The notes under the pieces: generated by a model
Told to the model about the DNA's origin: nothing
Seen by the model: only the letters and a program-made list of their open reading frames with translations
The model's database searches: none
Part shown: positions 31,703-50,838 of the stretch, piece by piece
Layout: the number at the start of each line of letters is the position of its first letter
How positions within the stretch are numbered: position 1 is the stretch's first letter
NCBI RefSeq assembly: GCF_963853765.1
Contig: NC_088854.1
Location: 23,684,001 to 23,748,000, forward strand
DNA from: Magallana gigas
Taxonomy: Eukaryota
Length of the DNA stretch: 64,000 bases
Direction: 5' to 3'
Program-made: the position numbers and the translations under genes

Positions 31703-34700
31703 TTATTGCTGTAGCCCCACCATTTTGGCGGACATTTCCCACAACGATTTGGCTGCTTCGTCATCCCGTGCTGCCTTAGATTCCTGAACCACGGCACAAT
31801 CACTGGAATAAATTGTCTCTTACAAAGTCTGAAACATTGCTATATATTTATCGGGATTTAACACTAACATCGAAGGACTGTGTGTACCAATATATACATT
31901 TTAAGGTGGCTCTTTACATCCACAGTTTATTCCAATTTTCAATAGAAGACCACAAAACATATACTTATCAAATATTAAAATGACGATAGGGATACTATAG
32001 GTATTTTTAAAGAATTTGTTAATGTTTTTTCGTGTTTTTGTAAAATATTTTTTAAAAAGACAGCTATCAACAAATTGAGAGAAATTATTTTGTCATATGA
32101 TGGATATTTCCTTGGACACATAAAAAAATATAACACTTCTTAACATTCAAAAATGTTATTATTGCAATTTTTTTTAGTATTTCCCCAAAACATATTTTTC
32201 ATATTTTCTTACTCTGTTGACAAATCATCTGAAAAAGTTGCTTGATGTTATAAGAAAATGTATTTTAATAAATGTGAAATAAAAAATTGAATGAAAACAA
32301 TTGCAAATAAACACAAAAAATATTTTAAATTTTATTTGGTATGAAAGTTCCTCATGTAAGGGTTATCGTTCCTAAGTCCCAAGGCCCAAACACCTTGGGG
32401 AATTTTCATTTCTGAGTTGAAGAAAATTTCCTAAATATAATGTTGGAATGATAAATACATGCATATTTCATTATAGACTTTGCCCTGTTTAAGTGAATAT
32501 ATTCGCTTTAGTGCAAAACTAAGTCAAATAAATAAAGGGGAACATTGACTAGGCTAATAGGATTTATGTATCCCAACCTGAGAAAAATTCAAAGCAACCC
32601 TCTCATCCCCGTTAGGTGTCGATATTAATGTGCATTAAAGTACTATTATAATTGAAATATTTTCACCTGTTTAGAATTTTCTTTCACGGTATTCAACCAA
32701 AAAATACGTTTTAGAAATTTTTGGAAAGTTAAAAAAAATTATTGTTCTCAATGGGAATCGAGCTCATGACCTACTGGTTTGTAGTGAACCCACTAACCCA
32801 CTGCGCTACGGTGTAACATTTCGATGATGCTAAAGAAACTCTTTAAAAATTTATACTTGATTTTATTGTTTATTTCTATAAATAATACCACACAACGTGA
32901 AGGTGTCACATACCACATTACTTGTAAGTAATGAATTTTCCAATTATCAAATTAAATCTATACATTTAACAAATTTTTCAAAATAGCGGTTCCCATACAA
33001 TTCACCTCAGTTTAAATCAGACAGTACCGGAAATGCATGTTTCCAGATTTACTTTTTTGCGTACTGCGTCATCAAAAAGTGGTGTATAGAGCCACCTTAA
33101 AAATGTCAAATGCCATGGACAATTTTACTCCTATTACTTAGATCTAAATAAGTAACAGTATTAACGGATATATATACAGAACGTATTGAATATGTATTTG
33201 TTGATATGGCACCATGAGTTTATCGAAACGTTGTTTATAATATTGCCCTTGTATTGAATTAACTATAACTACATTTCTACTGCAATACCTGAAATATTTC
33301 CCCGTTACGTTTTCCAAACTTTCCTCAACTGCGCAGTGTATGTTCGTTTGTGCCCCTTCCCATGGGGACTTAAAAAACAGAGACAGGGTTGGATATAAAA
33401 TGGTGAATCCTGGGAAATATCTGCCCAGCTCCGTGGCCACTGAACCAGGGTGGAGCGAATTAACTGTCACGCCCGTCCCTAAAAAATGGGTCATAAAAAG
33501 TCGAGAATAGTTTCAGCGGCTATGAAAACGATAGTTTTTGTTTTTAAAAGTTTGAAGATATCCTGTTAAACTAATGAAATATTGTTTTCATATTTAAATT
33601 AAATAATAAATAAATAATAAAATAATTATAAAAATATTATATGTTCTTAGGTTTATAATGTTGACATGTACCTTGAAGTCTCCTGCTAAGCTCTCTGGAG
33701 AACAGAATATTAGCTAGCTTGCTCTGTGCGTACGCTTCGATTCGACTATAGCTTTTCTCGTCTTTGATTTTGTCATAATTAATTTTGGTGGTAACTGAAA
33801 AGAAAGAACGAATCTTTATATCTTCAACAGAATGTACTCTAAAGTATGCTTTTATTCCCAAACTAATGTAAATAGGTTAATACTGATTATTTTTTATTTC
33901 AGAATACACCATACCTCCAAATGCATGCACTAGTTTTCATATGAACTGCGATGGACACAAATGTCACAATTTATGCCTGATGTTTAAGTCAATGTATATA
34001 TACATCTAATAAAATGTCTACAGTCACTTACAGGTATGAGCTAGTGAAGAAACATTAATGATTCTGGCGGGAGCGGATCGTTTTATTTTTTCCAGGAGTA
34101 GGTTGGTCAGAAGGAAATGACCGAGGTGGTTGGTTCCGAACTGCATCTCGAACCCGTCAGAGGTCTTCATGTAAGGGCACATCATCACTCCTTGTATAAC
34201 AGAAATACCACAAAATATGAGGTGTAAAGGAAATCATGGTCTTTCATGAACCGGCGTAACTCTCGGGGGTGAAGTCATCAATTAATGAAAAGGATTGCGA
34301 GTTTTATTTTCTGTTTAATGACTTGTAGAAAACACGAGGAGGATGACATTGTAAAGGAGTTCTCAACAAACTATTTTTACATTCTATATACTTTTCCACA
34401 CAATTATAATCTTATTTAATATCATTTTTACATGTTTTGTATAAGTATCTATCATAAATGGTCAAATTTCAGTGGGAAAACTTATCTTATTTTACAGTAG
34501 GTCCCTACCAAATTTTTAAACGTAAATTGACACGATGATAATGAAGTAACTTACCAGCATTATTCAGCAATATATTTATTCTGGGTTCAGTTTTGTTGAT
34601 ATCTTGAGCGAACTTTCGGACCGATTCTAGTGAGGCCAGGTCCAAACTCTTCAAAACCACTTGTTTACTTCCGGTCCTTTTTATGACGTCAGCTAGCGCA

Positions 34701-36202
34701 TTTTCTCCGCGACTTTTGTCTCGACATGCTAGAATCACCCGAGCTCCTGAAAAAAAATGACTTTGTTTAATAATTTGAATGTCATATGGTGATATTAAGG
34801 TTTGATCACAGACTAACAGTATCCTTTCCGTCTATAAGTAATGGTTATAAAGATTATATTCTTTAGAATTTGGATACAAGGCATTTGTATTCTGAAGTTC
34901 TAATATTAGTATTCCAGGAGGATTATGTGGATAAACAACACGTACATTACTTGAGTGTCAATCAGGACGACGACCTTTTTTCTGCTAACATCTGTAGTTA
35001 ATAATCAATATTTTAAGAAGCCCTGTATACTGTACGTGTACCAAATGTACCTCTGTTCGCTAGGTCCACAGCGGTCTCTTTGCCGATACCCGTGTTTGCC
35101 CCCGTGATAATCACCGTCTTGCCGTCCAGGCGAGCCTTGCTGAGACATCTGCCGCCCGCCTTCCAGCGCCGAAACACTGCCACTGTTATCGCTGAAATAG
35201 TAACCACGGGATTGCGGTAGGGACATCAAAGATAACAATTTCATTCACCACGGCTTGTTATACTGGTTCTCTATATAATTGTTCAGCTACTGACCAGTAT
35301 TTAATATCGGCTATGTTCACAAAATTAGAATAGAAAGTAACTTGACCAAATGAAAAATATTGTAACGGGATGGGTGAAATAATGACGGACCAGAGCGGGA
35401 TTTGAACCCTATTTGAATACCAGCGCCAGATAGCTCAGTTGGTAGGCCACCTGAACAGAGTTCATATCCTGGTCTTGTCCGTCATTACTTCTCTCATCAA
35501 GTTACAATATATGTAAATTTGATGATGAATACATTTTAAATAAATTACGTGCTTTAATTCAATCATCCACATTGACATTACGACAAAGTCAGATTTGGTC
35601 AGCAATTATTGAAACGGTAAACATTGATCGAACTGCTCTACCCAAGTCAAGGGTTTCTGACCCGCTCCGCTCTATGTAAATGTTTATGTAGAGCGGTGCG
35701 GATCAGAAACTCTAGACATGGGAAGATAATCAAATTGACTTTTTCCCATGTTTTATAGACTTATGGTACGGGTGGTTTATCATAGAAACACATAATTGTT
35801 CGTTTTAGGATAACATGTTACAGGTTTAAAAAACTTGATCAATTAATGACTTAGTTAATTTTACATTATCATATATGAGATACATTCTCTTTTGAGAAGT
35901 GGACTGCAGGCACAGCCTACATCCACATGGATTTAGGCTATGCCTGTCCACTTCTCAAACGAGAATATATGATATATAGTGATTTTAATTCAAATTAAAA
36001 AGACCTATATATAGTCATACATAGGGGGTCAAAAACAGGGACAATGGTTGCAGAGGGTGCCAAATATCCATGTTGTACCTGGCGAAATTTACTTCTCGCA
36101 GTTAAAATTGCATTAGTGGATAATCGCAGAAATATTACCTGCTACACCAAGACTCGCAATAATGGTTTGGTTCTCAGTTATTAACTTCCCTAATTCATCC
36201 AT
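31703..36202 (-). CDS. Retinol dehydrogenase 11/12/13-like short-chain dehydrogenase/reductase (~322 aa)
   Basis: Exons (minus): 36202-36139, 35191-35051, 34746-34555, 34190-34032, 33794-33672, 33478-33289, 31802-31703; 969 nt, all phases match. Motifs [28 protein letters not shown] (YxxxK) and NSLHPG. N-terminal membrane anchor [16 protein letters not shown]. Confidence 0.92.
31901..33100. mobile_element. 1.2-kb TTAA-flanked MITE in the last RDH intron, containing a tRNA-related segment (~32755-32815)
   Basis: Termini ttaaggtggctctttacatc and gtggtgtatagagccaccttaa. Confidence 0.8.
35361..35506. repeat. Inverted pair of tRNA-related SINE-like half units in RDH intron 1
   Basis: tgtaacgggatgggtgaaataatgacggacca pairs with tggtcttgtccgtcattacttctctcatcaagttaca. 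The interior agatagctcagttggtag resembles a tRNA A-box/D-arm. Confidence 0.6.
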
Positions 36203-39918: not shown

Positions 39919-39920
39919 CT

Positions 39921-40002
<82 letters not shown>
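39919..40002. repeat. (CT)n microsatellite about 100 bp downstream of the vWA gene stop (likely 3' UTR)
   Basis: Nearly perfect CT run with one interruption. Confidence 0.95.
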
Positions 40003-40006
<4 letters not shown>

Positions 40007-40101
40007 AGAAGTTGAGAACACCTGTGTCTTTGATTGTTTTACACTTATCACATCTCATTTCTTCTTCTCCTTTATCTCTCGATTCATTCTTTCTCTCTGA
40101 A

Positions 40102-41155
40102 TTAGAAGTTGAGCATGCCTCTATCTTTGATTGCCTTATACTGATCTGGAATCTCCATCAAAGCCTGCAAGGCAAATGCTGCCTGTGGGTTTCTAGCAGT
40201 TGTCATTATCTTATGGAAATCAACAAACTGAAAATTGTCAAAATTTCTTCTAGGTAGACGGTCATCAAAATCTTCCATGATATCCCATGGTCCATCACCT
40301 ACCCCAACCATCACGATTGATATAGGCCAATTGGAGGCTTCAACAATGGCATTCACAGTTTCTCTCTCATTGGTTACTTGTCCATCAGCGACGATAACAA
40401 GGATGTGATACTGAAAGTACCCGAAAATAGTGGATATTATAATGTTGGCTACATTTAAAACCATCCAAGACATGATTTTAAATACAAAACATATTTCCAT
40501 TTTCAAAGTCACAAAGAAGCAGACTTTCCTCAGTCTCTACATATTGCAAATTTTTATTTTCTATGAGATATAGCTTCCCCTTACCGTACGCTCACGTTTC
40601 ACAATATCAATGGCTTTATTGATTAGAGGTGCAAAATTGGTTCCTCCACTCAGACGAATGTTAGGGGTGATTTGATTGTACATCTCAAGGACATCATGGA
40701 AGCCATAACAATAACCCTGTGTACACAGAAAAAAAACCTTTGGATTTTCTGCATGCATCAATACATGTACTAAGTACAGGTATACCGGTAGATGTTTTGC
40801 AAGACCTGACTTAGATTATCATAATTTCAGATATTAAAGGAAAGAAAAATGGTACTAAATATTTCATAGAATGGCACATATAAAATAAAAATCAACCAAT
40901 AAATATTTTATCATAAAAGAAATAAACCAACCTCAGCTCTGAAAGGAAACACAGCTCTATCTCTTGTTGAGGCATCTCCAAATCCAAATGCAGGAATTTT
41001 GCCGTCATCATCAAAGGATTCTAAGGTCTCTCCTAGGATGCAGATCACCTGTTGGTAGTGACAAAACCTTTATAATACTATTCCATTTATTGGTGATAAT
41101 AAGTAATGCATTATTTAGAGGTACACTCAACTTTTACAGGTATTAAAATTCAATT

Positions 41156-41187
<32 letters not shown>

Positions 41188-43903
41188 CAACAAAAGCCAT
41201 AATAAAATAATCTTTTCGAGAAGAAGATATTTCTCTCATGATTTGAGCAAAGTGAAATCTTTACAACCTAAGGATGCTTCCACACAAGTTACAGCTTTTC
41301 TGGCCATTTGGTTTTTGAGAAAAATTTTAAAGTTTTTTTCTTTATTATCCTATGTAAGAATTCGACCCACATTGTGGGCCCACTCTACCCCAAGGATCAT
41401 GGTTTAAACAAACTGGAATCTACACAATCTGAGGATGCTTCCACACAAGTTACAGCTTTTCTGGCCAATTAAATTTTGAGAAGAAGATTTTTTAAAGATA
41501 CCAACAAATTTTTAAAAATTCTTTTTAATCATCCCTCTTTGAAAAAAAGTGTGACCCTTTATTTTGAAAAACTTAAATTCCCTTAACCTAAGGATGTTTT
41601 GTGCAAAGTTTGGTTTAAATCAGCAGAGTGGCTCTTGAGAAGTTGAAAATCTAAAAAGTTTACAGGCAGATGGACAGACAAATGGACGGACAGACAGGCT
41701 GATGGACAGACAGATGGATAGACGCTGGACAAAAAGTGATCAGAAAAGCTCACTTGAGCTTTCAGTCAGTTGAGCTAAAAACTGTATATAATTCTTTGTG
41801 TATGCATGGTAGGGACAAAAAATCACTCACTAGAAGAATAGTTATGCAGTAAGTGCTCCATCTACCAAAGCACAAATTGATACTATTTTTGTGAATAGGT
41901 TATCCAGTTAATGTCTAAGCCTCTTTACTCTGAACTTCAGCTATTTAAATCACTGGTAATTTTACAATTCATTAATCATTATCATGCAGCACATCAGATA
42001 CTTTTGACCAAACTTCTATTTAGACTAAATACACTCAAAACACCAATAATATCATAATGTACAAGTACAGCTTTACAAATGCAGCAGTTAGCTAAGAAAA
42101 ATTAATTAATACATGTACAAGCCAGGGCTGCGTTTTACAAAAGAACTTAAGACCTACTACCAAATTAATGAATGGTAATTAATCACAAACTTATCAATGA
42201 TTCATTCTTATGGCTGGAAAATATAATTATGGGAATTAAAATATTTGTTAACAAATGGTTTTATGTCAATTTTGTTCTTTTAAGATCATTCTACGAGACT
42301 GTAAATCTTTACGACATTGTCGTAAGTTCTTTTGTAAAATGCAGCCCTGGTTATATGTGTGCAAATCTTGGCACTACAGAGGTGCAACTAAAGACATTTC
42401 TTAAAATTGTAGGGAATCATCTATGTGTTTCATATATGCTTTTTTTTTTAAATACAGGCATATCTAAATTTAAGCATGTTTTGTAACTGTAACTGAAAAA
42501 GGGAGGTAAATAAAGAAACTATTGGCAAATCCATCAGTACCTGTTGGTAAGGGTTTAGAAACCTCTGGCCTATAGAGTGAAGGGACTGTCCCCCAAAACT
42601 TCTCTGACCCTGCACTGCATTACTGGCAGTATAATCTATCCCTGTTAACAACAGAAAGAGTGCCCGGTCCTGACATATACACATGGTACTTATATTCTAA
42701 TTACTAAATCTATTATAATTACAAGAAATGCATTTGAAATACATGTACAAACATTTTTTGGCAAATATGTAATAGCTTGGGCAGTTGATTTCAATGTTTC
42801 ATAAGCTTTGGGGGGAAGTAAATATCTTCATGTAGCTGTATTTGAAATTTTAAAAAATCATGTTCTACAGCAAAAAAATCTGTATAACTATGATAGCTCT
42901 CAGGGAAAAGACTGGACCATTGGGCTACAGTAACTGCTCCAATATTCCCACTGTAAGGTTGCCATTTTATGTTCAAATATTAAGGCACCTATGATTCAAC
43001 AGTGTAAATCATTGTTTGTTTTAAATTCTTGGTAACCAAACACTACAAATTAATGCAGCCCTGCTCTTGCAGTTTAATTTCATTAATGTACTTTACAATA
43101 TCTATATTTGGTAAATCTGAAATTTGTATTTATTAATCGGTTTCTTTTGCCTTTGCTGTTCAAAAATCTCTTTTTTATATCTAGCCTTTTCTACACAATA
43201 ACTGATATACTTTATATGAGTTGCCTACCCTTTGATAAGGATTAATTTCCCTGGGATCTATACAGTGCAGACTTTTCCCTCCAAATGTTCTAATCCCTTG
43301 GCACATATTACTTTGTGTAAAATCCACACCTACAACATGCTCATTATTAATTCTCTTTTTCAATTCTATGATATTCATTTCATAAAAAGTACTACATGTA
43401 CTGAAGATGATTTTCAAGTACTGGTACATGTACATGTATCTCAAATGCATTTGAACATATTGTAAATCAAAATTATATTAATGGTAAATGAATTTCAAAT
43501 GCATGTGGTAAACTTATTGTAAACCAAAAATAAACACTTGTACTTATGAATTTACATGTTATAGAAACATCAGTTTTCAATATGATTAAATATTCATATA
43601 CAAAAACTCACCAAATATTAGGCCACATCCCTCTACTCCTGCTTTTCTGATAGCAGTGGTAACATCTTCAAGGGAAGTAAATCTATCAACAAAACTAGAA
43701 TAACTGCTGCCTCCAAAAAAGCTGAAGAGGCTATTGGAGTTGCTTTTCTTTGCCTTCATCTGACTGAGATCTGGGTAGAGCTTGTTCTGTGAGGACCCCG
43801 ATGAGGAGGCTGATGAGGAGGCACTCGATGAGGAGGAACCTCCACAGCAACACCAGATAAAGAAAACTATCACACAAAATATGATCACGCTGATGACTTC
43901 CAT
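40102..43903 (-). CDS. Copine/RGLG-type vWA-domain protein with an N-terminal membrane anchor, no C2 or RING domain (~316 aa)
   Basis: Exons (minus): 43903-43612, then [43329-43229 OR 42641-42541], 41048-40932, 40716-40585, 40410-40102; 951 nt. Copine A-domain motifs GxDFTx[49 protein letters not shown] and DNFQFVDF. A likely non-coding first exon ends at donor 44704. Confidence 0.9.
41156..41781 (+). mobile_element. Helentron-like non-autonomous element (HINE type) in a vWA gene intron
   Basis: Starts aagaggcccatgggccacatcgctcacctgag. Contains internal ~165-bp tandem units (gatgcttccacacaagttacagcttttctggcca twice) and a gacagacag tract. Ends agctcacttgagctttcagtcagttgagctaaaaa. Confidence 0.75.
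42122..42350. mobile_element. 229-bp MITE with ~30-bp TIRs, 190 bp downstream (transcript sense) of alternative exon 3b
   Basis: ccagggctgcgttttacaaaagaactta pairs with taagttcttttgtaaaatgcagccctgg. No TSD was resolved. Confidence 0.75.
42541..42641 (-). CDS. Alternative exon 3b of the vWA gene ([34 protein letters not shown])
   Basis: ctttctgttgttaacag|...CAG|gtactg; 101 nt, phase 1 in and phase 0 out. Confidence 0.8.
43229..43329 (-). CDS. Alternative exon 3a of the vWA gene ([34 protein letters not shown])
   Basis: atgttgtag|...AGG|gtaggc; 101 nt, phase 1 in and phase 0 out. Confidence 0.8.
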
Positions 43904-44405
43904 TCTTCTAAAAGTAAGAGGAACAAATACAAAATATTTGTCTATGTTCATGCATTCATTTTAACATCATGCACTTGGTTTATAATCGATTTTTAATGGA
44001 GAGATTTATGCTTCAAATTTTGGATGGACTATTTATAAAATATTTAATAGATCTACTAAACTACATTGTAGCTGCCATCCTGGAGTTGAATTCTTTTTTG
44101 TTACAGCTATAACCAACTACTTGTAGCAACGTTTAAATAAAGTAATTTAACTCAGCTGACTTTTTAACAATCTCCAGTCCTTTGCAATTAATCCTCAATA
44201 ACTCTTAAATATCCAGGTATTATTTGTTTAAATCACAGATTTGAAAGTTCTAAAAAGTTTTTCCAAAAATATCTTAGCTGGAGAAAATTGCGACATAAAT
44301 TTCTCAAATGTATGAACATCATAATTAAAATAACTCCAATTAATAAGATATGAAGAACAGATATTATATTTTCTAAAATAACAACAATACTATAAGGCTG
44401 AGGAT

Positions 44406-44473
44406 CAATCGCAACTTCTCGGGCCTTTCGTGTTTTTCCAAGCTTGCCGGAAAGGCCCGAGAAGTTGCGATTG
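44406..44473. mobile_element. 68-bp hairpin mini-element with perfect 24-bp arms and a 10-bp target-site duplication
   Basis: caatcgcaacttctcgggcctttc pairs perfectly with gaaaggcccgagaagttgcgattg. GGCTGAGGAT flanks it at 44396-44405 and 44474-44483. Confidence 0.75.
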
Positions 44474-44899
44474 GGCTGAGGATATGACGCCCCTGTGGTC
44501 TGATGCAGAGCACACAATAACTCATTTAAAATAATCAGCATGCGTTTTGACTTCTACTTAGCTTATATCATTTGAATAATTCAACAATACTCTATTGAGA
44601 TAACCTATTCATTATTTTATATTTATTATCCCCTAACGTTATTTATTACTAGATTTGAACAGTTTGAGTATCTCTCTTAAATTTTTCTACAATCACTGTT
44701 TACCTGGAAGCAAATGAGATTCTATAGCTGAGTCTTCTATAGCTGAGTCTTCCTGACCAGTTCGGAAACAAGTCTGAAATTGATAAGAGTTGACAAATTC
44801 CCTGACGATAAATAGAGATGTTATTGCAGCATGAACTTATCAACGACACGTCAGCTCATGCAACAAAACTGAAAGTAAACAAATCAACGTGAATCAGAA

Positions 44900-45254
44900 A
44901 CGGAAAAGAGAGCTCCAAAACCCTCTTAATAAAACGTTTTGATGAATCCGTTATTTTCGGTCCTATCAATTTTAGCAATTCATCTTTTATTCTTGGGTAG
45001 TTTTGCACTTTTAGAACTGTGCCGTAAGTTTAGTTTTTCTTTTTTAAATAAAAAAACTATAACTTTTAGGAGAAAGAATATCATTCGAATAGTAATTTTA
45101 TGCGGAAGCGACAAAATCCCTTAGATCCCAAAGTCTTTTGGCACGAAATCATCTAGCACAAAAACCAAAGACGACTTCCGGTGAAAATAAACGCGTTTTG
45201 CCGTTTTCACGGTTTTGCCTTCTTTTCTAGCTTCGTTTCGTGTCTTTTGCAATC
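44900..45254. promoter_or_regulatory. Probable bidirectional promoter between the vWA gene (minus) and CSTF1 (plus)
   Basis: Head-to-head genes about 550 bp apart (5' exon donor 44704; CSTF1 ATG 45255). ETS-like ACTTCCGG at 45174-45181 and local CpG enrichment. Confidence 0.55.
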
Positions 45255-48200
45255 ATGATCGGTGCATTGGGCGGAGACTCCGAAGTTAAAAACAGAGAAT
45301 TAATGTACAGATTAATGATAAGGTAATACGAACAATAATGCAATAGGCCTAACCATGATTTATTTGCAGGTGTGTTTGCCCCCCCCCCCCAATCACACTT
45401 TTGTACAGTCGTTTGACCAGTTCCGAATTTTGACCAGTTCCGAATAGTTCAGAAGTTAAATAGCAAAAAATTAATGAAATAAAACATGGAGGAAAAAATC
45501 AATACCTTTAATATAAACACGTATTAATGCTTGTTTGAATTCTGCTGTAGTTTCATTTTTTGCGGTCATACATGTATTTGATATCGGTCTTAGATTATTC
45601 GACCTACTTTCGCTTTGTAATAAATCCAGGTCATTGCAACGCTAATATGCACGTAAAATCGTCTGTCGGTGCCTTAAATTTTCACTTGTAACAAGATTTC
45701 TTTTTTTAAATGTAGGTTTAGTATGTATTCTAACATACCCAAAAGCAAACGGGATAAAAAATAAAATAAAAACGCAAGTGGATGCAGAATTTTATTGAGC
45801 CGTCATTTTACGAGTTCCGAATACCCAATTTGTTTCCCTCTGTTTTAGGATTTAATGAAGGGATTGATTAAAACAAATACTTCTGGACTTCATTAAATGA
45901 CTTTCTCCGTCTCAAATAAATCATATTGTACCACAATAATGATAAGTGGAGGAGCTGCGACTGTATTCCGACAAGATGTTAGAAACCAGGCTAAATTATT
46001 GTTACGGTGATTTTGTCTGTCATTTCCGTGCAAATCAAACTGTCTTGTTAAGAAAATACCAATTACTGAGATGTTTGCATTAAACCTGTTATTCAACAGG
46101 TTCAATCAATAGTTTTAAGGCCGAAACTTTTTTTTATCTGCATTCCATATGTATAGGAACAGTTATGTTATTCGGAACCCATCGGCTTATTCACAACTGG
46201 TAAAATGGCTTCCCACGTAATTTGTTAGAATAAAATTTTATTTAAAAAAAATTAAATGCAGTAATATTGCATTTATATCAGCAGGGATATGGTGTATATA
46301 GGCCAAAAAATCAGATCTAAAAATAACACCCAGGAACATTTACAGCACCTCCAAATATGTACCCTATTCGGAACTGGTCAAACGACTGTATCATGGAACC
46401 ACAGGTTAATAGTACTGGTAATGCCAGTCTTTACTCTAACCACTGCAACCACTAAAATTTTATTTTAACTTCGTATAATCCACAACAGTTAAAAAATCAT
46501 AGTGAGAATTTAATATCGGTTTCCCCACAAATGATATAATCTATGCCGATTATTAATACCTCAGGTTCATTTAGGAATTTACAGTACTGTAATGAAATTA
46601 TATATTTTCACATGTATCCTGCTCATGCATATATATACATGTACACTATTTTGCCTTTTTGGTACTTTTTATTCATTCTTTTATGTTGTCTTTACCAGTC
46701 AGTTGTTTTATGATGGACATCAACAGTTAGCAGTTCAGCTCTCTAACCTTGTCAAGGCACACCCTGCTTGTCCCCCATCAGACAGACTCTTCAAAGTTGT
46801 CAAATTTGGCTTGGAATCAGAAGAAGGTGAGTTTTAGGATCTATTCACATGATACACAGATGTTGGGTTTTATTTTCTCCTAAATGCGTTTATATAATGT
46901 AAACTTATCCTATATCTGTATATAGCTTACTTCTATTCGCTCAGAAGGTTGAAAATTGGGGCATTTTAATGCATGTATTGCTGTGTTTTTCTTGAGCATC
47001 GATCTTGTTAAAACCTTAATTTGAACTTTTTCCTTGATATCTTGAAATTTAAAACAAGATAGAAGTTTCATTACAAAAAAACAAACTTGTTTTTTTTTGG
47101 ATTAGCTTTGCATTTGAACAAGTTGTTCTAATACATGTATCTAATCTCATTAACAGAACTGTCTGGAAGCAAAAAGATTGAACAAAATATTGCGCCAGGT
47201 TCAGGAATTGACTTGGAATATGAAACAGATGGTAAAACACTTTGAAAATATTTTTTTTTTATCTGTTAAACTTGTATTCATGAATTCAAATCAATTAATA
47301 TGACTATTTGGTTATGACAAACATGTTGCTCAGCATTGGCTAGTACATGTATATCTAATATCCTGTCAATGTTTAGATAGATGTGATCTAGTTACATGTC
47401 TTCAGCAGTGTTTAATGTACTGAGGCAGCCATAGACACATTTTTGGACACCTTATTTCTTGTAATTTCAGTACAGTCAATATCTCCTGAGGGAGCCCTGT
47501 ATGAGACTTGTTATGTCACAGCCCACAAAGGCCCATGCCGGGCTGGGGCATTCCACTCCTCAGGGAAACTCATTGCCACAGGGTCAGAGGATGCCTCCAT
47601 CAAGGTATGATAGACACTGTTGCTGAAGATTTGCAAGCCATCTACACTATAATGGACCAGGGCAGGCTGGAAGTGTGGATGGTTGGCAGTTGACTTTCAT
47701 TTTAAATTCCTTTTTCAGTGTCTTGAAAGACAAACTTGAAGAACTTTAAGATTAAAGTTGCAGTATTTGTACATTGTATTTTTGCTTCAATACAGTAAAA
47801 CTTGTTTAGTACAAACAGGGATATAGCAAAATCTTGGTTATAGCAAAGTTTTTTGGAGTCCCAGGTAAATTTCTTAACAAATCTTTGCAAAATTTACAGT
47901 TATAACGAATTTGGATACAATGAATTTACTGATATATATGTTATAGTTATTATTATGAATTCGTTTAATGGATATAACGAATTACGGATATAATGAAGTA
48001 AATCCATTAGCCCCTAGGACTTCGCTATAACCGAGTTTTACTGTCTATACATGTATATATGCATGGTTTTATTTTCAGGGAGATGGAGTTGTCAATAGTT
48101 GGTCCATACATTTATCTTTAGACTTATTAAAAGTACTTCATTAATCACAATTGACATCTTGAAAATACTCACATTTTTTGTTTTATTACATAATTATTTA

Positions 48201-50838
48201 GATCTTAGATGTAGACAGAATGTTGGCCAAAAGTGCCACCCCTGCAGAAATAATTGCGATGGAAACCCCACAACAAGCAATGGAAAATCACCCAGTCATT
48301 AGAACACTGTATGATCATATAGATGTAAGTGCAAATTCCACTATTATATGTATTCTATATTTTTGACCAACATTTTATGCTATCGATTTATAAAACTTTA
48401 ATTGCATGAAAATCAAAATCTTTTGAATTACAATTTCAGGAGGTCACATGTTTAGATTTCCATCCTACACATTCTATTCTGGCATCAGGCAGCACAGACT
48501 ACAGCATTCGTTTCTTTGAATATTCAAAACCTTCTGTCAAGAAAGCTTACAAAAGTATACAGGAGGCTGCCCCAGTCCGCTGTCTGTCATTTCATCCCTC
48601 GGGGGATTTTCTCCTGGTGGGGGCGGATCATCCTACAGGTAAATATAACACAGGCACAGTAAATATACACAGACACAGGTTAAAATTACACAGATGCAGG
48701 TAAATATAACACATGGAAATATAACACAGACACTGGTAAACACAACGCTGACATGGGTAAACTTAACACAGACACAAGTAAATATAACATGGACACTGGT
48801 AGATATAACACATACACAGGTAAAAATAACACAGACACAGGTAGATAGACACAGACAGGAAACTGAGAGAAATCTATTGCATATTTATGCATCTGTCGAT
48901 CTTGGAACCAATACATGCAATAACTATTTTAATTTATTTGGAACTACGTATCACAAGCGAGTGAAGTCATTTTAACATGGGATATGTAACACATTATTAT
49001 GCAAAGATTGTGTCAGCATGTGATCTTGTTTTTTTACATACATGTACATGAAGAGATGAGTGCATCAGTTTCAATTATTGAAGTGTGTATTTGTAAAGAA
49101 CGACATTTTGTTTACAGTGAGGTTGTACGATGTGAACACCTTCCAGTGCTTTGTGGGTAGGAACCCCAGTACTCATCACACCCTCCCTGTCACTACAGTG
49201 AGTAAAATGTCTAATGTCAGCTGTATTCTCAGGGATGTCTCAAACTTAGACTCAAGATACATGTATCAGTTTAAGTACAGTTTGCTTCAAAAGACATGTA
49301 ATACATTTATTTAGGTAAAATGGAGCCCCAATGCCAATTTGTACGCCACAGGCTCGTTGGATGGGGATATAAAGGTTTGGGATGGAGTCAGCAATCTGGT
49401 GATTAGCACGTTTAAGAAAGCTCATGATGGAGAAGAGGTGTGTTCTGTCACCTTCTCCAGGAACTCAAAGGTATAACAGCAATTAAAACAGGTCACTTTT
49501 ATACATATGGATACATGTATTTGCATCAACTATTTAAGATTATAATGCATCATCTATATTGTATTGTTTATTACTGGTAAAGTTCTTTGCTTCAGTGTTA
49601 CTTAGAACTTAAAGTCATTTCAATATTTAAATCCCTTTTTAAACCAGGCAAAATCTTTTACAGTTGTGATTGAGCATAAATAACATGGGGCAAAAATATT
49701 TTGTAAACAGGATACTTTTTAGTCATGTTTTAAACGAAATGTTGTTTTATACAAGTATTTCTTGTCATGTATATAACTATGAAAGATGATTTGGAATTTT
49801 ATTTTATACAGATATATTTTTGATAATCTACACTAAACTGTATCATGTACATGGGGAAAATTAAGTTCCATGATAATTAATTTTTCTGAATGTTTGATTG
49901 CTAATGCTTGAGTATTTCTGATTGTACTGTATCTTATGTGTATGTCTGTAATATTGAGATCTGTTGGTCTGTTTCAGTATGTTTTGTCCTGTGGGAAGGA
50001 CTCCTTGGTCAAGCTGTGGGAGCTGTCCACCAACAGGTGTCTGATAGTGTACACAGGGGCGGGGATGACCGGCAAGATGCAGCACGGGGCACAGGCAGTG
50101 TTCAACCACACAGAGGATTACAGTCAGTTCACACATGTAAACTCTGGTCAAAGAGACATGACGTGCAGTTGATGCTAAATTAGCTATCAATATACAATGT
50201 ACTTCTGATTTTGGACCTAAAGTGGAAGAGTCTTTCATTTAGACTGAGTTTTGGGTTTTTTTTGCATTGAGAAACAATGCCATTATCAGTCTCTCCAGAT
50301 TCTATTAATTTAATTGTTAATTTGATTGATTTCTTTCATGTAGTGGAGAGAAAAGGTTCTTGTTCCATGCAGTACTTCTCACTGGCTGCTCAGTAGTTAT
50401 AATTGTGTGTGGATGAACAAGAATACAAATCTCCAATCATTATACCATTTGTTAGAACAGTTTGTTAATTCTATAATTTCATTCCTGCAGTTTTCTTTCC
50501 TGATGAGAACACAACCTCTCTGTGTTGCTGGGACTCAAGGAATGCTGAGAGGCAGAGGTTACTGGCCCTGGGTATGTAGCTTGTATACAGGTTCTATCCA
50601 TATGTGTTTGAAATCTCTAAACAGTACAATGTCCCATGATCTTCATTTTATGGTGGATTCTTTTATTGATTGGTACTTTTATTGGCTAATATAGGCCTAT
50701 TCATTAATTTCTTTACAATTCACAGGACATAACGGAGCTGTACGATACATTGGGCACTCCCCCACTGGCCCCGCCTTCATCACATGCAGCGAGGATTTCC
50801 GTGCAAGATTCTGGTACAGAAAGGCAGATACAGACTAA
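45255..50838 (+). CDS. CSTF1: Cleavage stimulation factor 50 kDa subunit (WD40), ~433 aa
   Basis: 11 exons: 45255-45322, 46699-46826, 47157-47231, 47471-47604, 48202-48324, 48440-48638, 49118-49197, 49315-49470, 49978-50122, 50491-50571, 50726-50838 (1302 nt). Recognisable CstF-50 sequence: [71 protein letters not shown]. Confidence 0.96.
45404..46390. mobile_element. TA-flanked Tc1/mariner-type MITE in CSTF1 intron 1
   Basis: Termini tacagtcgtttgaccagttccgaat and attcggaactggtcaaacgactgta. Confidence 0.85.
47791..48045. mobile_element. Short Tc1/mariner-type MITE in CSTF1 intron 4
   Basis: Termini tacagtaaaact and agttttactgt, with subterminal gctataac/gttatagc repeats. Confidence 0.65.
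48635..48860 (+). repeat. ~21-bp minisatellite beginning at the CSTF1 exon 6 donor
   Basis: Units resemble cag-gtaaatataacacagaca. GT positions at 48639, 48679, 48700, 48736, 48757, 48778, 48799, 48820 and 48841. Confidence 0.85.

Follow-up and report, generated by a model that had tools for sequence, protein, structure and literature searches.

A copine-like gene of the oyster Magallana gigas holds, one behind the other, two homologous exons of 101 nt that each encode the first loop of a MIDAS (a metal-ion-dependent site for adhesion) in a vWA (von Willebrand factor A) domain, which raises the question of whether both exons are used, whether they are used one at a time, and what their exchange would alter in the protein. 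The gene lies on the minus strand of a 64,000-nt stretch of contig NC_088854.1 (positions 23,684,001 to 23,748,000; hereafter the window, whose first letter is position 1 of the oyster coordinates given below). We consider it very probable that the two exons, 3a and 3b, form a true mutually exclusive pair that stems from an old tandem duplication of a 101-nt exon in a copine/RGLG-type vWA gene. The gene comprises six exon positions, spanning 44908-40102 from exon 1 to the stop codon, with a 3′ untranslated region (UTR) that runs below 40102:

44704-44908, minus strand: exon 1 (5′ UTR), whose 5′ limit is only the reach of the RNA contigs
43612-43907, minus strand: exon 2, with the ATG at 43903 and phase 1 at its end, from the gene model and RNA joints
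43229-43329, minus strand: exon 3a (type A) of 101 nt, entered in phase 1 and left in phase 0, with the MIDAS loop DFTQS and the end NPYQR
42541-42641, minus strand: exon 3b (type B) of 101 nt, entered in phase 1 and left in phase 0, with the MIDAS loop DYTAS and the end RFLNPYQQ
40932-41048, minus strand: exon 4 (constitutive), part of the Copine domain (Pfam PF07002)
40585-40716, minus strand: exon 5 (constitutive), carrying the MIDAS Thr (GGTNFAP)
40102-40410, minus strand: coding part of exon 6 up to the stop, with the Asp of the MIDAS (ADGQV) and residues that correspond to the allosteric Ca-site of RGLG1, NCBS1

Exon 2 codes for a hydrophobic anchor at the N-terminus, a cluster of Cys residues, a Ser-rich linker, a YPDL motif, the first helix of the vWA domain and most of its strand β1. 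Both alternative exons have AG directly before and GT directly after them, and they agree at 58 of 101 nt and, counting in each peptide the G carried over from exon 2, at 20 of 34 aa. This likeness exceeds chance, because the homology between 3a and 3b reaches E = 7e-6 genome-wide and both are spliced into RNA (see below). Queried with the 3b peptide, the 564-Mb genome as a whole yielded only 3a, 3b and one distant intronless paralogue, and no third copy of exon 3 exists within the gene. With exon 2, one exon 3 and exons 4-6 joined, the open reading frame (ORF) is uninterrupted over 316 aa; inclusion of both alternative exons (1052 nt) or of neither (850 nt) shifts the frame and leads to early stops. 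Because 101 leaves a remainder on division by three, an mRNA that has both exons, or lacks both, loses the frame, and any productive protein therefore holds exactly one copy. The out-of-frame mRNAs would presumably be removed by nonsense-mediated decay (NMD). An initial annotation of the window had described two homologous 101-nt exons with the same phases and good splice sites, of which both or neither would break the frame; the coordinates, the AG/GT borders, both 34-aa peptides and the early stops of the two aberrant splices were all reproduced. Two other conceivable causes of exclusive splicing were discarded: steric hindrance is ruled out by the 587-nt intron that separates 3a from 3b, and incompatibility of U2 with U12 splice sites is not involved, all sites being GT-AG. 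The polypyrimidine tract is weak before the 3a acceptor and better before that of 3b.

Four public RNA runs (X12, X27, X8 and X4), from four studies and two organisms, were aligned with positions 40020-45900. All four consist of assembled contigs of unrecorded library type, for which contig depth is a rough measure. Every intron is missing from the contigs, with GT..AG at its borders, which marks them as products of spliced RNA; and since the genome has no other copy of these exons to account for them, they do not come from other loci. The joint of exon 1 to exon 2 (44704>43907) was present in X27, X8 and X4, across a CT..AC intron (GT..AG on the minus strand). Between exons 4 and 2, the joints that include 3b (41048>42541 and 42641>43612) occurred in all of X12, X27, X8 and X4, and those that include 3a (41048>43229 and 43329>43612) in three of the four runs and as many studies (X12, X8 and X4); all four alternative joints end in GT..AG when read on the minus strand. 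A separate 159-nt contig represents each alternative exon, made of the 101-nt exon and ~29 nt each of exons 2 and 4, which is the bubble that a de Bruijn assembler leaves for two alternative middles between common ends. The initial annotation had proposed two isoforms and singled out the junctions 43612>43329, 43612>42641, 43229>41048 and 42541>41048; all four were seen, in assembled contigs without tissue labels, and the exon 2-3a-exon 4 and exon 2-3b-exon 4 mRNAs differ only in the segment of the MIDAS loop.

Contig depths indicated both forms to be abundant. The depths of 3a and 3b were 7.45 and 12.1 in X12, 16.4 and 14.5 in X8, 6.3 and 12.9 in X4, and 0 and 4.4 in X27, so that 3a accounted for 33-53% of the summed 3a and 3b depth in three runs. 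Contigs of constitutive exons had depths of 15.5-18.1 (X12), 25.2-35.2 (X8) and 14.7-16 (X4), and within each of these runs the sum of 3a and 3b comes close to the constitutive depth, as expected, given the roughness of the measure, if nearly every transcript holds exactly one copy. Both the 3a and the 3b mRNA are thus substantial isoforms. Neither a 3a-3b joint nor an exon 2-exon 4 joint is among the joints listed, in assembled contigs that drop rare forms. Runs that appeared in search lists as 3a-only or 3b-only were rejected as such, X12 being listed for 3a alone and yet holding both; the run lists are incomplete and therefore silent on tissue specificity.

Could one of the copies be an unused or decaying duplicate, a pseudo-exon beside the only one that matters? 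X27 contains 3b alone, at a depth of just 4.4, the polypyrimidine tract of 3a is the weaker one, and the database gene models of Saccostrea and Pinctada carry the B type only. Against this stand the precise joining of 3a with its neighbours, exons 2 and 4, in three runs, each of a different study, at the depth share given above, its open and in-frame sequence, and the retention of A-type exons in four mussels and four scallops. The RNA joints have already largely refuted a decaying duplicate, which we regard as scarcely credible.

How widely the pair occurs was examined among relatives gathered by a profile-free search with exon 6 and by two word-based searches, which retrieved a large family that NCBI names 'copine family protein 1/2-like' or 'RGLG-like'. 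Genomic loci of exon 3 were compared in Mytilus, Lingula, Capitella, Lineus, Mercenaria, Pomacea and Acanthaster. Four of these seven loci hold a tandem pair of 101-nt exons flanked by AG and GT:

Mytilus edulis, L004: 3818-3919 and 4315-4416
Lingula anatina, L005: 5049-5150 and 5912-6013
Capitella teleta, L008: 4419-4520 and 4613-4714
Lineus longissimus, L010: 2465-2566 and 4320-4421

The same discrete 101-nt exon is present as a single copy in the loci of Mercenaria, Pomacea and the starfish Acanthaster. The single Acanthaster exon is followed by GC, not GT (L009 4012-4018), apparently as part of a GC-AG intron. Orthology of the oyster and Lingula loci is supported by a common neighbour, since CSTF1 stands head-to-head with the copine-like gene in L005 as it does in the oyster. 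In RefSeq, pairs of isoforms of equal length that differ only within the 34-aa segment were found for Lingula, Lineus, the chiton Liolophura and Mizuhopecten, and likewise for four Mytilus species and the scallops Pecten, Argopecten and Ylistrum; the differences between RefSeq isoforms of echinoderms, gastropods and heterodont bivalves lie outside this segment. Each exon type is nearly invariant within mussels and within scallops. Between oyster, mussel and scallop, A-type segments are identical at 20-23 of 34 residues and B-type segments at 22-24 of 34, compared with 66-72% for the whole protein. Type-specific residues include the last one, R in A and Q in B, and an F three residues before NPYQ in B. 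The suggestion in the initial annotation that both copies are under selection agrees with these sequence comparisons, both types having been kept across bivalve families and in other phyla, as predicted; among other bivalves and molluscs, to which it had pointed, the pair was found in mussels, scallops and a chiton.

The age of the duplication was approached from codons and from trees. Where the two copies of a genome encode identical residues, only about half of these have identical codons (five genomes), which argues that synonymous sites are saturated between the copies and the copies are old. A tree of the segment (31 rows and 34 columns, with the labels A and B set after the sequences had been seen) was poorly resolved when left free, and no species' two exons came out as sisters. 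Approximately unbiased (AU) tests of single clades were all non-significant and cannot date the duplication, even an oyster-only duplication yielding p = 0.28 with 34 columns. A joint test was more discriminating: the topology in which all duplications are lineage-specific, i.e. bivalve A and B exons form one clade and the pairs of Lingula, Capitella, Lineus and the chiton are each sisters, fell 17.1 log-likelihood units below the free tree and was rejected (p-AU = 0.009). Neither a topology with all A exons in one clade and all B exons in another (p = 0.47) nor a common duplication in molluscs only (p = 0.17) was rejected. Position 2 of the segment (V/M/A versus I) separates A from B in all seven lineages. 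The order of the exons is A then B in oyster, mussel, Capitella and Lineus, and B then A in Lingula. That the pair is older than the split of oyster, mussel and scallop is certain; an origin in an early lophotrochozoan, followed by loss in gastropods and heteroconch bivalves, is probable but not certain.

Another origin, and one with a precedent, would be that the exon was duplicated independently in bivalves, chiton, brachiopod, annelid and nemertean: in mrp-1, exclusive exons of the same length have arisen separately in helminths, annelids and molluscs (PMC7434440). The reversed order in Lingula, as given by the labels, the p value of 0.28 for an oyster-only duplication and the single copies in gastropod, heterodont and starfish loci all fit such a history. 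The rejection of the joint lineage-specific topology speaks against it, as do the non-rejection of one A and one B clade, the lack of sister exons within species in the free tree and the split of the types by position 2 in seven lineages. On balance, we regard repeated origins as doubtful and an early common duplication as the better account.

To which protein, then, is the exchange applied? Exons 4-6 match the Pfam families Copine (PF07002) and vWA-TerF-like, exon 6 alone scoring 122.6 bits for Copine (gathering cut-off 27; E = 2e-35), with matches for exons 4 and 5 as well, and orthologues carry PF07002 and PF10138. Among solved structures, the vWA domains of RGLG5, RGLG2 and RGLG1, E3 ligases of plants, come nearest (E = 1e-79 to 1e-76), and the copine BONZAI1 comes next (1e-21). 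In the 97 aa that precede the vWA domain, which consist of a hydrophobic helix and a disordered linker, Pfam gave no match to C2 domains, and a RING domain is absent, the ORF ending 4 residues past the Copine-domain match. As judged from these domain matches, the oyster protein is neither a classical copine, which would have C2 domains, nor an RGLG E3 ligase, which would have a RING domain. RGLG proteins are E3 ligases; without RING, the oyster protein cannot be a ligase of this kind, and the 'RGLG-like' RefSeq names of its orthologues are due to the vWA domain alone.

The N-terminus begins with a hydrophobic stretch (residues 4-20), followed by a CCC cluster, a Ser-rich low-complexity linker and the YPDL motif. 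AlphaFold2 (AF2) models were made of orthologues, namely the Saccostrea-like P0172 (B type, 86% identical) and the Mytilus P0191 (A type). With a mean predicted local distance difference test (pLDDT) score of 85-86, they have residues 3-21 as a helix, then a disordered stretch and a vWA fold predicted with confidence. The combination of a transmembrane (TM) segment with a copine domain is therefore indicated both by sequence (4-20) and by the helix of two orthologue models (3-21). In the Lingula orthologue, a strongly basic stretch comes right after the N-terminal helix, which by the positive-inside rule suggests a cytoplasmic side for the vWA domain. The protein thus probably has an N-terminal membrane anchor and a cytoplasmic vWA domain. 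Between the two lies the YPDL motif (43780-43794, minus strand; residues ~41-47), and alignments of 36-40 orthologues, ranging from amphioxus to molluscs, have LYPDL as their consensus. YPxL motifs bind ALIX, and the YPDL of the copine-like protein resembles them.

This layout has a parallel in CPNA-1 of C. elegans, an 'atypical' copine-domain protein with a predicted N-terminal TM segment, a copine domain at its C-terminus and, like the oyster protein, no C2 domain. CPNA-1 differs in its size of 1107 aa and its long linker, and no MIDAS-loop exon switch is reported for it in PMC3583664. Its copine domain is a cytoplasmic module that binds muscle-attachment proteins (PMC3583664). With the vWA domains of RGLG1, RGLG2 and RGLG5 (PDB 6K8x, 8HMG and 8XT5; PMC7155146) the oyster protein shares the D-x-T-x-S...T...D arrangement of the MIDAS, and the motifs FDD, FDNFQ and MEIP that match NCBS1 of the RGLG Ca-site occur in it too; unlike RGLG proteins, it has neither a RING domain nor an N-terminus of the myristoylation type, with a hydrophobic anchor in place.

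The alternative segment corresponds to residues 89-122 of the P0172 model and covers the end of strand β1, the D-x-T-x-S loop, a short helix, a loop of ~20 residues and the opening turn of the long helix that comes next. The Mg2+-holding MIDAS of RGLG1 is formed by D-x-T-x-S (162-166) together with T258 and D286 (PMC7155146). The oyster protein has the complete motif set, i.e. DFTQS (3a) or DYTAS (3b), the Thr in GGTNFAP of exon 5 and the Asp in ADGQV of exon 6, and aligns to RGLG5; by motif, its MIDAS residues would correspond to RGLG1 162-166, T258 and D286. The NCBS1-matching motifs, also placed by motif, appear to lie in constitutive exons. The residues on which all of 40 orthologues agree (G, D, T, S, N, G, LH and NPY) are kept in both versions of the segment, and the differences between 3a and 3b fall on the x positions, the short helix and the long loop. 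As the metal ligands are the same and their neighbours differ, the switch alters the surface around the metal site, not the ligands. The assignment of D-x-T-x-S to the first part of the vWA MIDAS, made in the initial annotation, is thus borne out, as is part of its further proposal that the isoforms have different metal/ligand-binding loops: the surrounding surface differs, but the ligands in D-x-T-x-S are unchanged, and 'different ligand surface' would be a more apt description than 'different metal binding'. Likewise, 3a does add two Cys in the oyster, but these are absent from the A-type exons of mussel and scallop and hence not a general feature of the type. The helix after the MIDAS spans 4 residues in the B-type model P0172 and 9 in the A-type model P0191; no contrast between types was drawn from this, the models being from different species.

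With such a surface, the 3a and 3b versions may present themselves to different partners, or to the same partners with different affinities. The isoforms could instead be interchangeable in function, both being made and the pair kept by neutral partitioning of expression, and indeed the invariant residues of the segment are all common to both versions. Yet the type-specific residues are held across oyster, mussel and scallop, and the conservation of each type between these families (59-71%) is like that of the rest of the protein (66-72%). We therefore think interchangeable isoforms unlikely, and the comparison of sequences leads us to infer a functional divergence of 3a and 3b.

What might steer the choice between the exons? 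Two intronic segments are complementary to each other and enclose exon 3a:

43429-43452, minus strand: upstream arm of the helix, in intron 2, 99 nt before the 3a acceptor
42726-42749, minus strand: downstream arm of the helix, in the 3a-3b intron, 84 nt before the 3b acceptor

The predicted helix comprises 24 bp (23 Watson-Crick pairs and one G-U pair), with a duplex energy of -33.8 kcal/mol. Folding energies of whole-intron duplexes were no better than those of shuffles (z = 0.3), and this uninformative global measure was replaced by the length of the longest uninterrupted helix. At 24 bp, the helix is the longest in the 2.56-kb interval between exons 2 and 4, and none of 300 first-order Markov simulations reached this length (maximum 20). 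Its arms do not belong to a transposon family, since the 24-mer is found at these two sites only in the 564-Mb genome. If formed, the helix loops out 679 nt together with exon 3a, which would bring the exon 2 donor near the 3b acceptor and bias the choice to 3b. Long-range intronic pairings that loop out one alternative exon, so that the constitutive donor nears the other acceptor, are known from Dscam1, srp and 14-3-3-zeta (PMC4691838, PMC6071210). The oyster arrangement differs from these in having one pair of arms, with no docking site for which several selectors compete, in its lack of conservation across species (four genomes), and in being known here from sequence alone.

Intronic helices were also found in three of the four other genomes compared, at other positions. 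Capitella has a 28-bp helix (L008 3586-3613/4347-4374; 0 of 60 simulations) that lies wholly in intron 2 and ends 45 nt before the first alternative exon, Mytilus a 20-bp helix inside the intron between A and B, and Lineus a 20-nt pair of 95% complementarity (L010 4081-4100/4493-4512) that flanks the second alternative exon, B; near the exon pair of Lingula, there is no strong intronic helix. The oyster complementarity could accordingly be a by-product of palindromic intron sequence, with the reading frame, NMD and ordinary splicing factors sufficing for exclusive use. Consistent with this, the arms are made of two palindromic cores and have a 13-nt direct repeat in common, the other four genomes lack an equivalent architecture, and a weaker local hairpin in intron 2 (-15.4 kcal/mol) could compete for the upstream arm. 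Against a by-product stand its length beyond that of every simulated helix, its restriction to two sites in the genome and the matching distances of its arms before the two acceptors, in the geometry of known exon-looping pairings (PMC4691838, PMC6071210). We lean slightly toward the by-product; an oyster-lineage modulator of exon choice, as distinct from an established mechanism, is a plausible role for the helix.

Taken at its fullest, the reading of this locus would be that one duplication, older than the divergence of molluscs, annelids, brachiopods and nemerteans and retained for over half a billion years, created a two-state switch of the MIDAS partner surface in a membrane-anchored cytoplasmic protein, that the switch was lost in gastropods and heteroconchs, and that in the oyster the 24-bp helix steers the choice. 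This combination is possible, and we put it forward tentatively. Several observations weigh against the exon pair as interpreted here. Rare transcripts with both exons or neither could still occur, and two weaker joints stand outside those listed; the RNA runs come without tissue labels and with unrecorded library type, and with their rough depths they do not demonstrate regulated or tissue-specific use. The metal ligands of D-x-T-x-S are identical in 3a and 3b, the tree rests on 34 columns with labels assigned post hoc, by which the order in Lingula is reversed, and no exon-looping arrangement equivalent to that of the oyster exists in the Mytilus, Lingula, Capitella or Lineus genomes.

Mutually exclusive exons that arise by tandem duplication are a textbook mechanism, and two known cases come close to the present one. 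In Drosophila, the mutually exclusive exons 4A and 4B of the β-PS integrin gene (myospheroid) swap a segment of the β-I domain, which is vWA-like, near its metal site; this is an extracellular domain of an integrin whose gene is unrelated, and the swapped segment is not known to be the first MIDAS loop itself. Exons 6a and 6e of coq-2 in helminths, annelids and molluscs (PMC7434440) resemble the oyster pair in being adjacent, homologous, of the same length and phase and used one at a time; both pairs swap a segment of a functional site, occur in molluscs and annelids and are absent from deuterostome orthologues. The coq-2 pair differs in its family, its site and its proven biochemical consequence (PMC7434440). 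No description of alternative MIDAS-loop exons in copine, RGLG-like or other vWA-domain proteins was found in the full-text literature searched. The claim of the initial annotation that none exists for this family therefore stands as far as this literature goes but needs amending for databases, because the automatic RefSeq annotation already carries isoform pairs for relatives. The oyster pair adds a new and deeply conserved case to a splicing mechanism that is well known; it is unusual for the depth of its conservation and its position in a binding site, and involves no new mechanism.

The vWA domains of copines and RGLG proteins are thought to be cytoplasmic protein-binding modules that act through their MIDAS face, and to our knowledge hardly any targets of the 'copine-domain-only' proteins of animals have been identified. 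Isoforms whose sole difference lies in 34 residues about the first MIDAS loop would amount to a natural specificity experiment, in which positions with a consistent difference between the types point to the probable surface of partner contact. The pair also contributes a well-supported case, with genomes of five lineages, to the debate on whether exclusive exons of lophotrochozoans are ancient or recurrent, and it offers a system of two exons and one candidate helix for the control of exon choice by RNA pairing outside arthropods.

On the other side of exon 1, at a distance of ~1.7 kb, lies the CSTF1 gene (46592-50300, plus strand), head-to-head with the copine-like gene and encoding the dimerisation domain of cleavage stimulation factor subunit 1 (E = 7e-22), behind which WD40 exons follow; the pairing of the two genes looks like conserved microsynteny and possibly reflects a common bidirectional promoter. 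Directly downstream and in the same orientation is a gene for an RDH12-like short-chain dehydrogenase (31706-35174, minus strand). A RefSeq protein of Saccostrea cucullata, 'retinol dehydrogenase 12-like' (P0320, 605 aa), fuses the copine-like protein with an RDH12-like dehydrogenase and is probably a chimeric gene model. The intronless paralogue, at C3:57511891-57512889 on the plus strand (L003 1207-2205), encodes 332 aa, in which a hydrophobic N-terminal helix is combined with a complete Copine domain (E = 1.5e-61), and is possibly an old retrogene. Between 3b and exon 4, intronic repeats at 41156-41766 and 42250-42350 reach RNA-contig depths of up to ~15,000 with many loose ends, which suggests that they are members of abundant transcribed repeat families. 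A 32-nt inverted repeat of 94% identity (42122-42153/42319-42350) resembles a small hairpin element, and a (CT)42 microsatellite at 39919-40002, ~100 nt past the stop codon, lies inside or just beyond the 3′ UTR.

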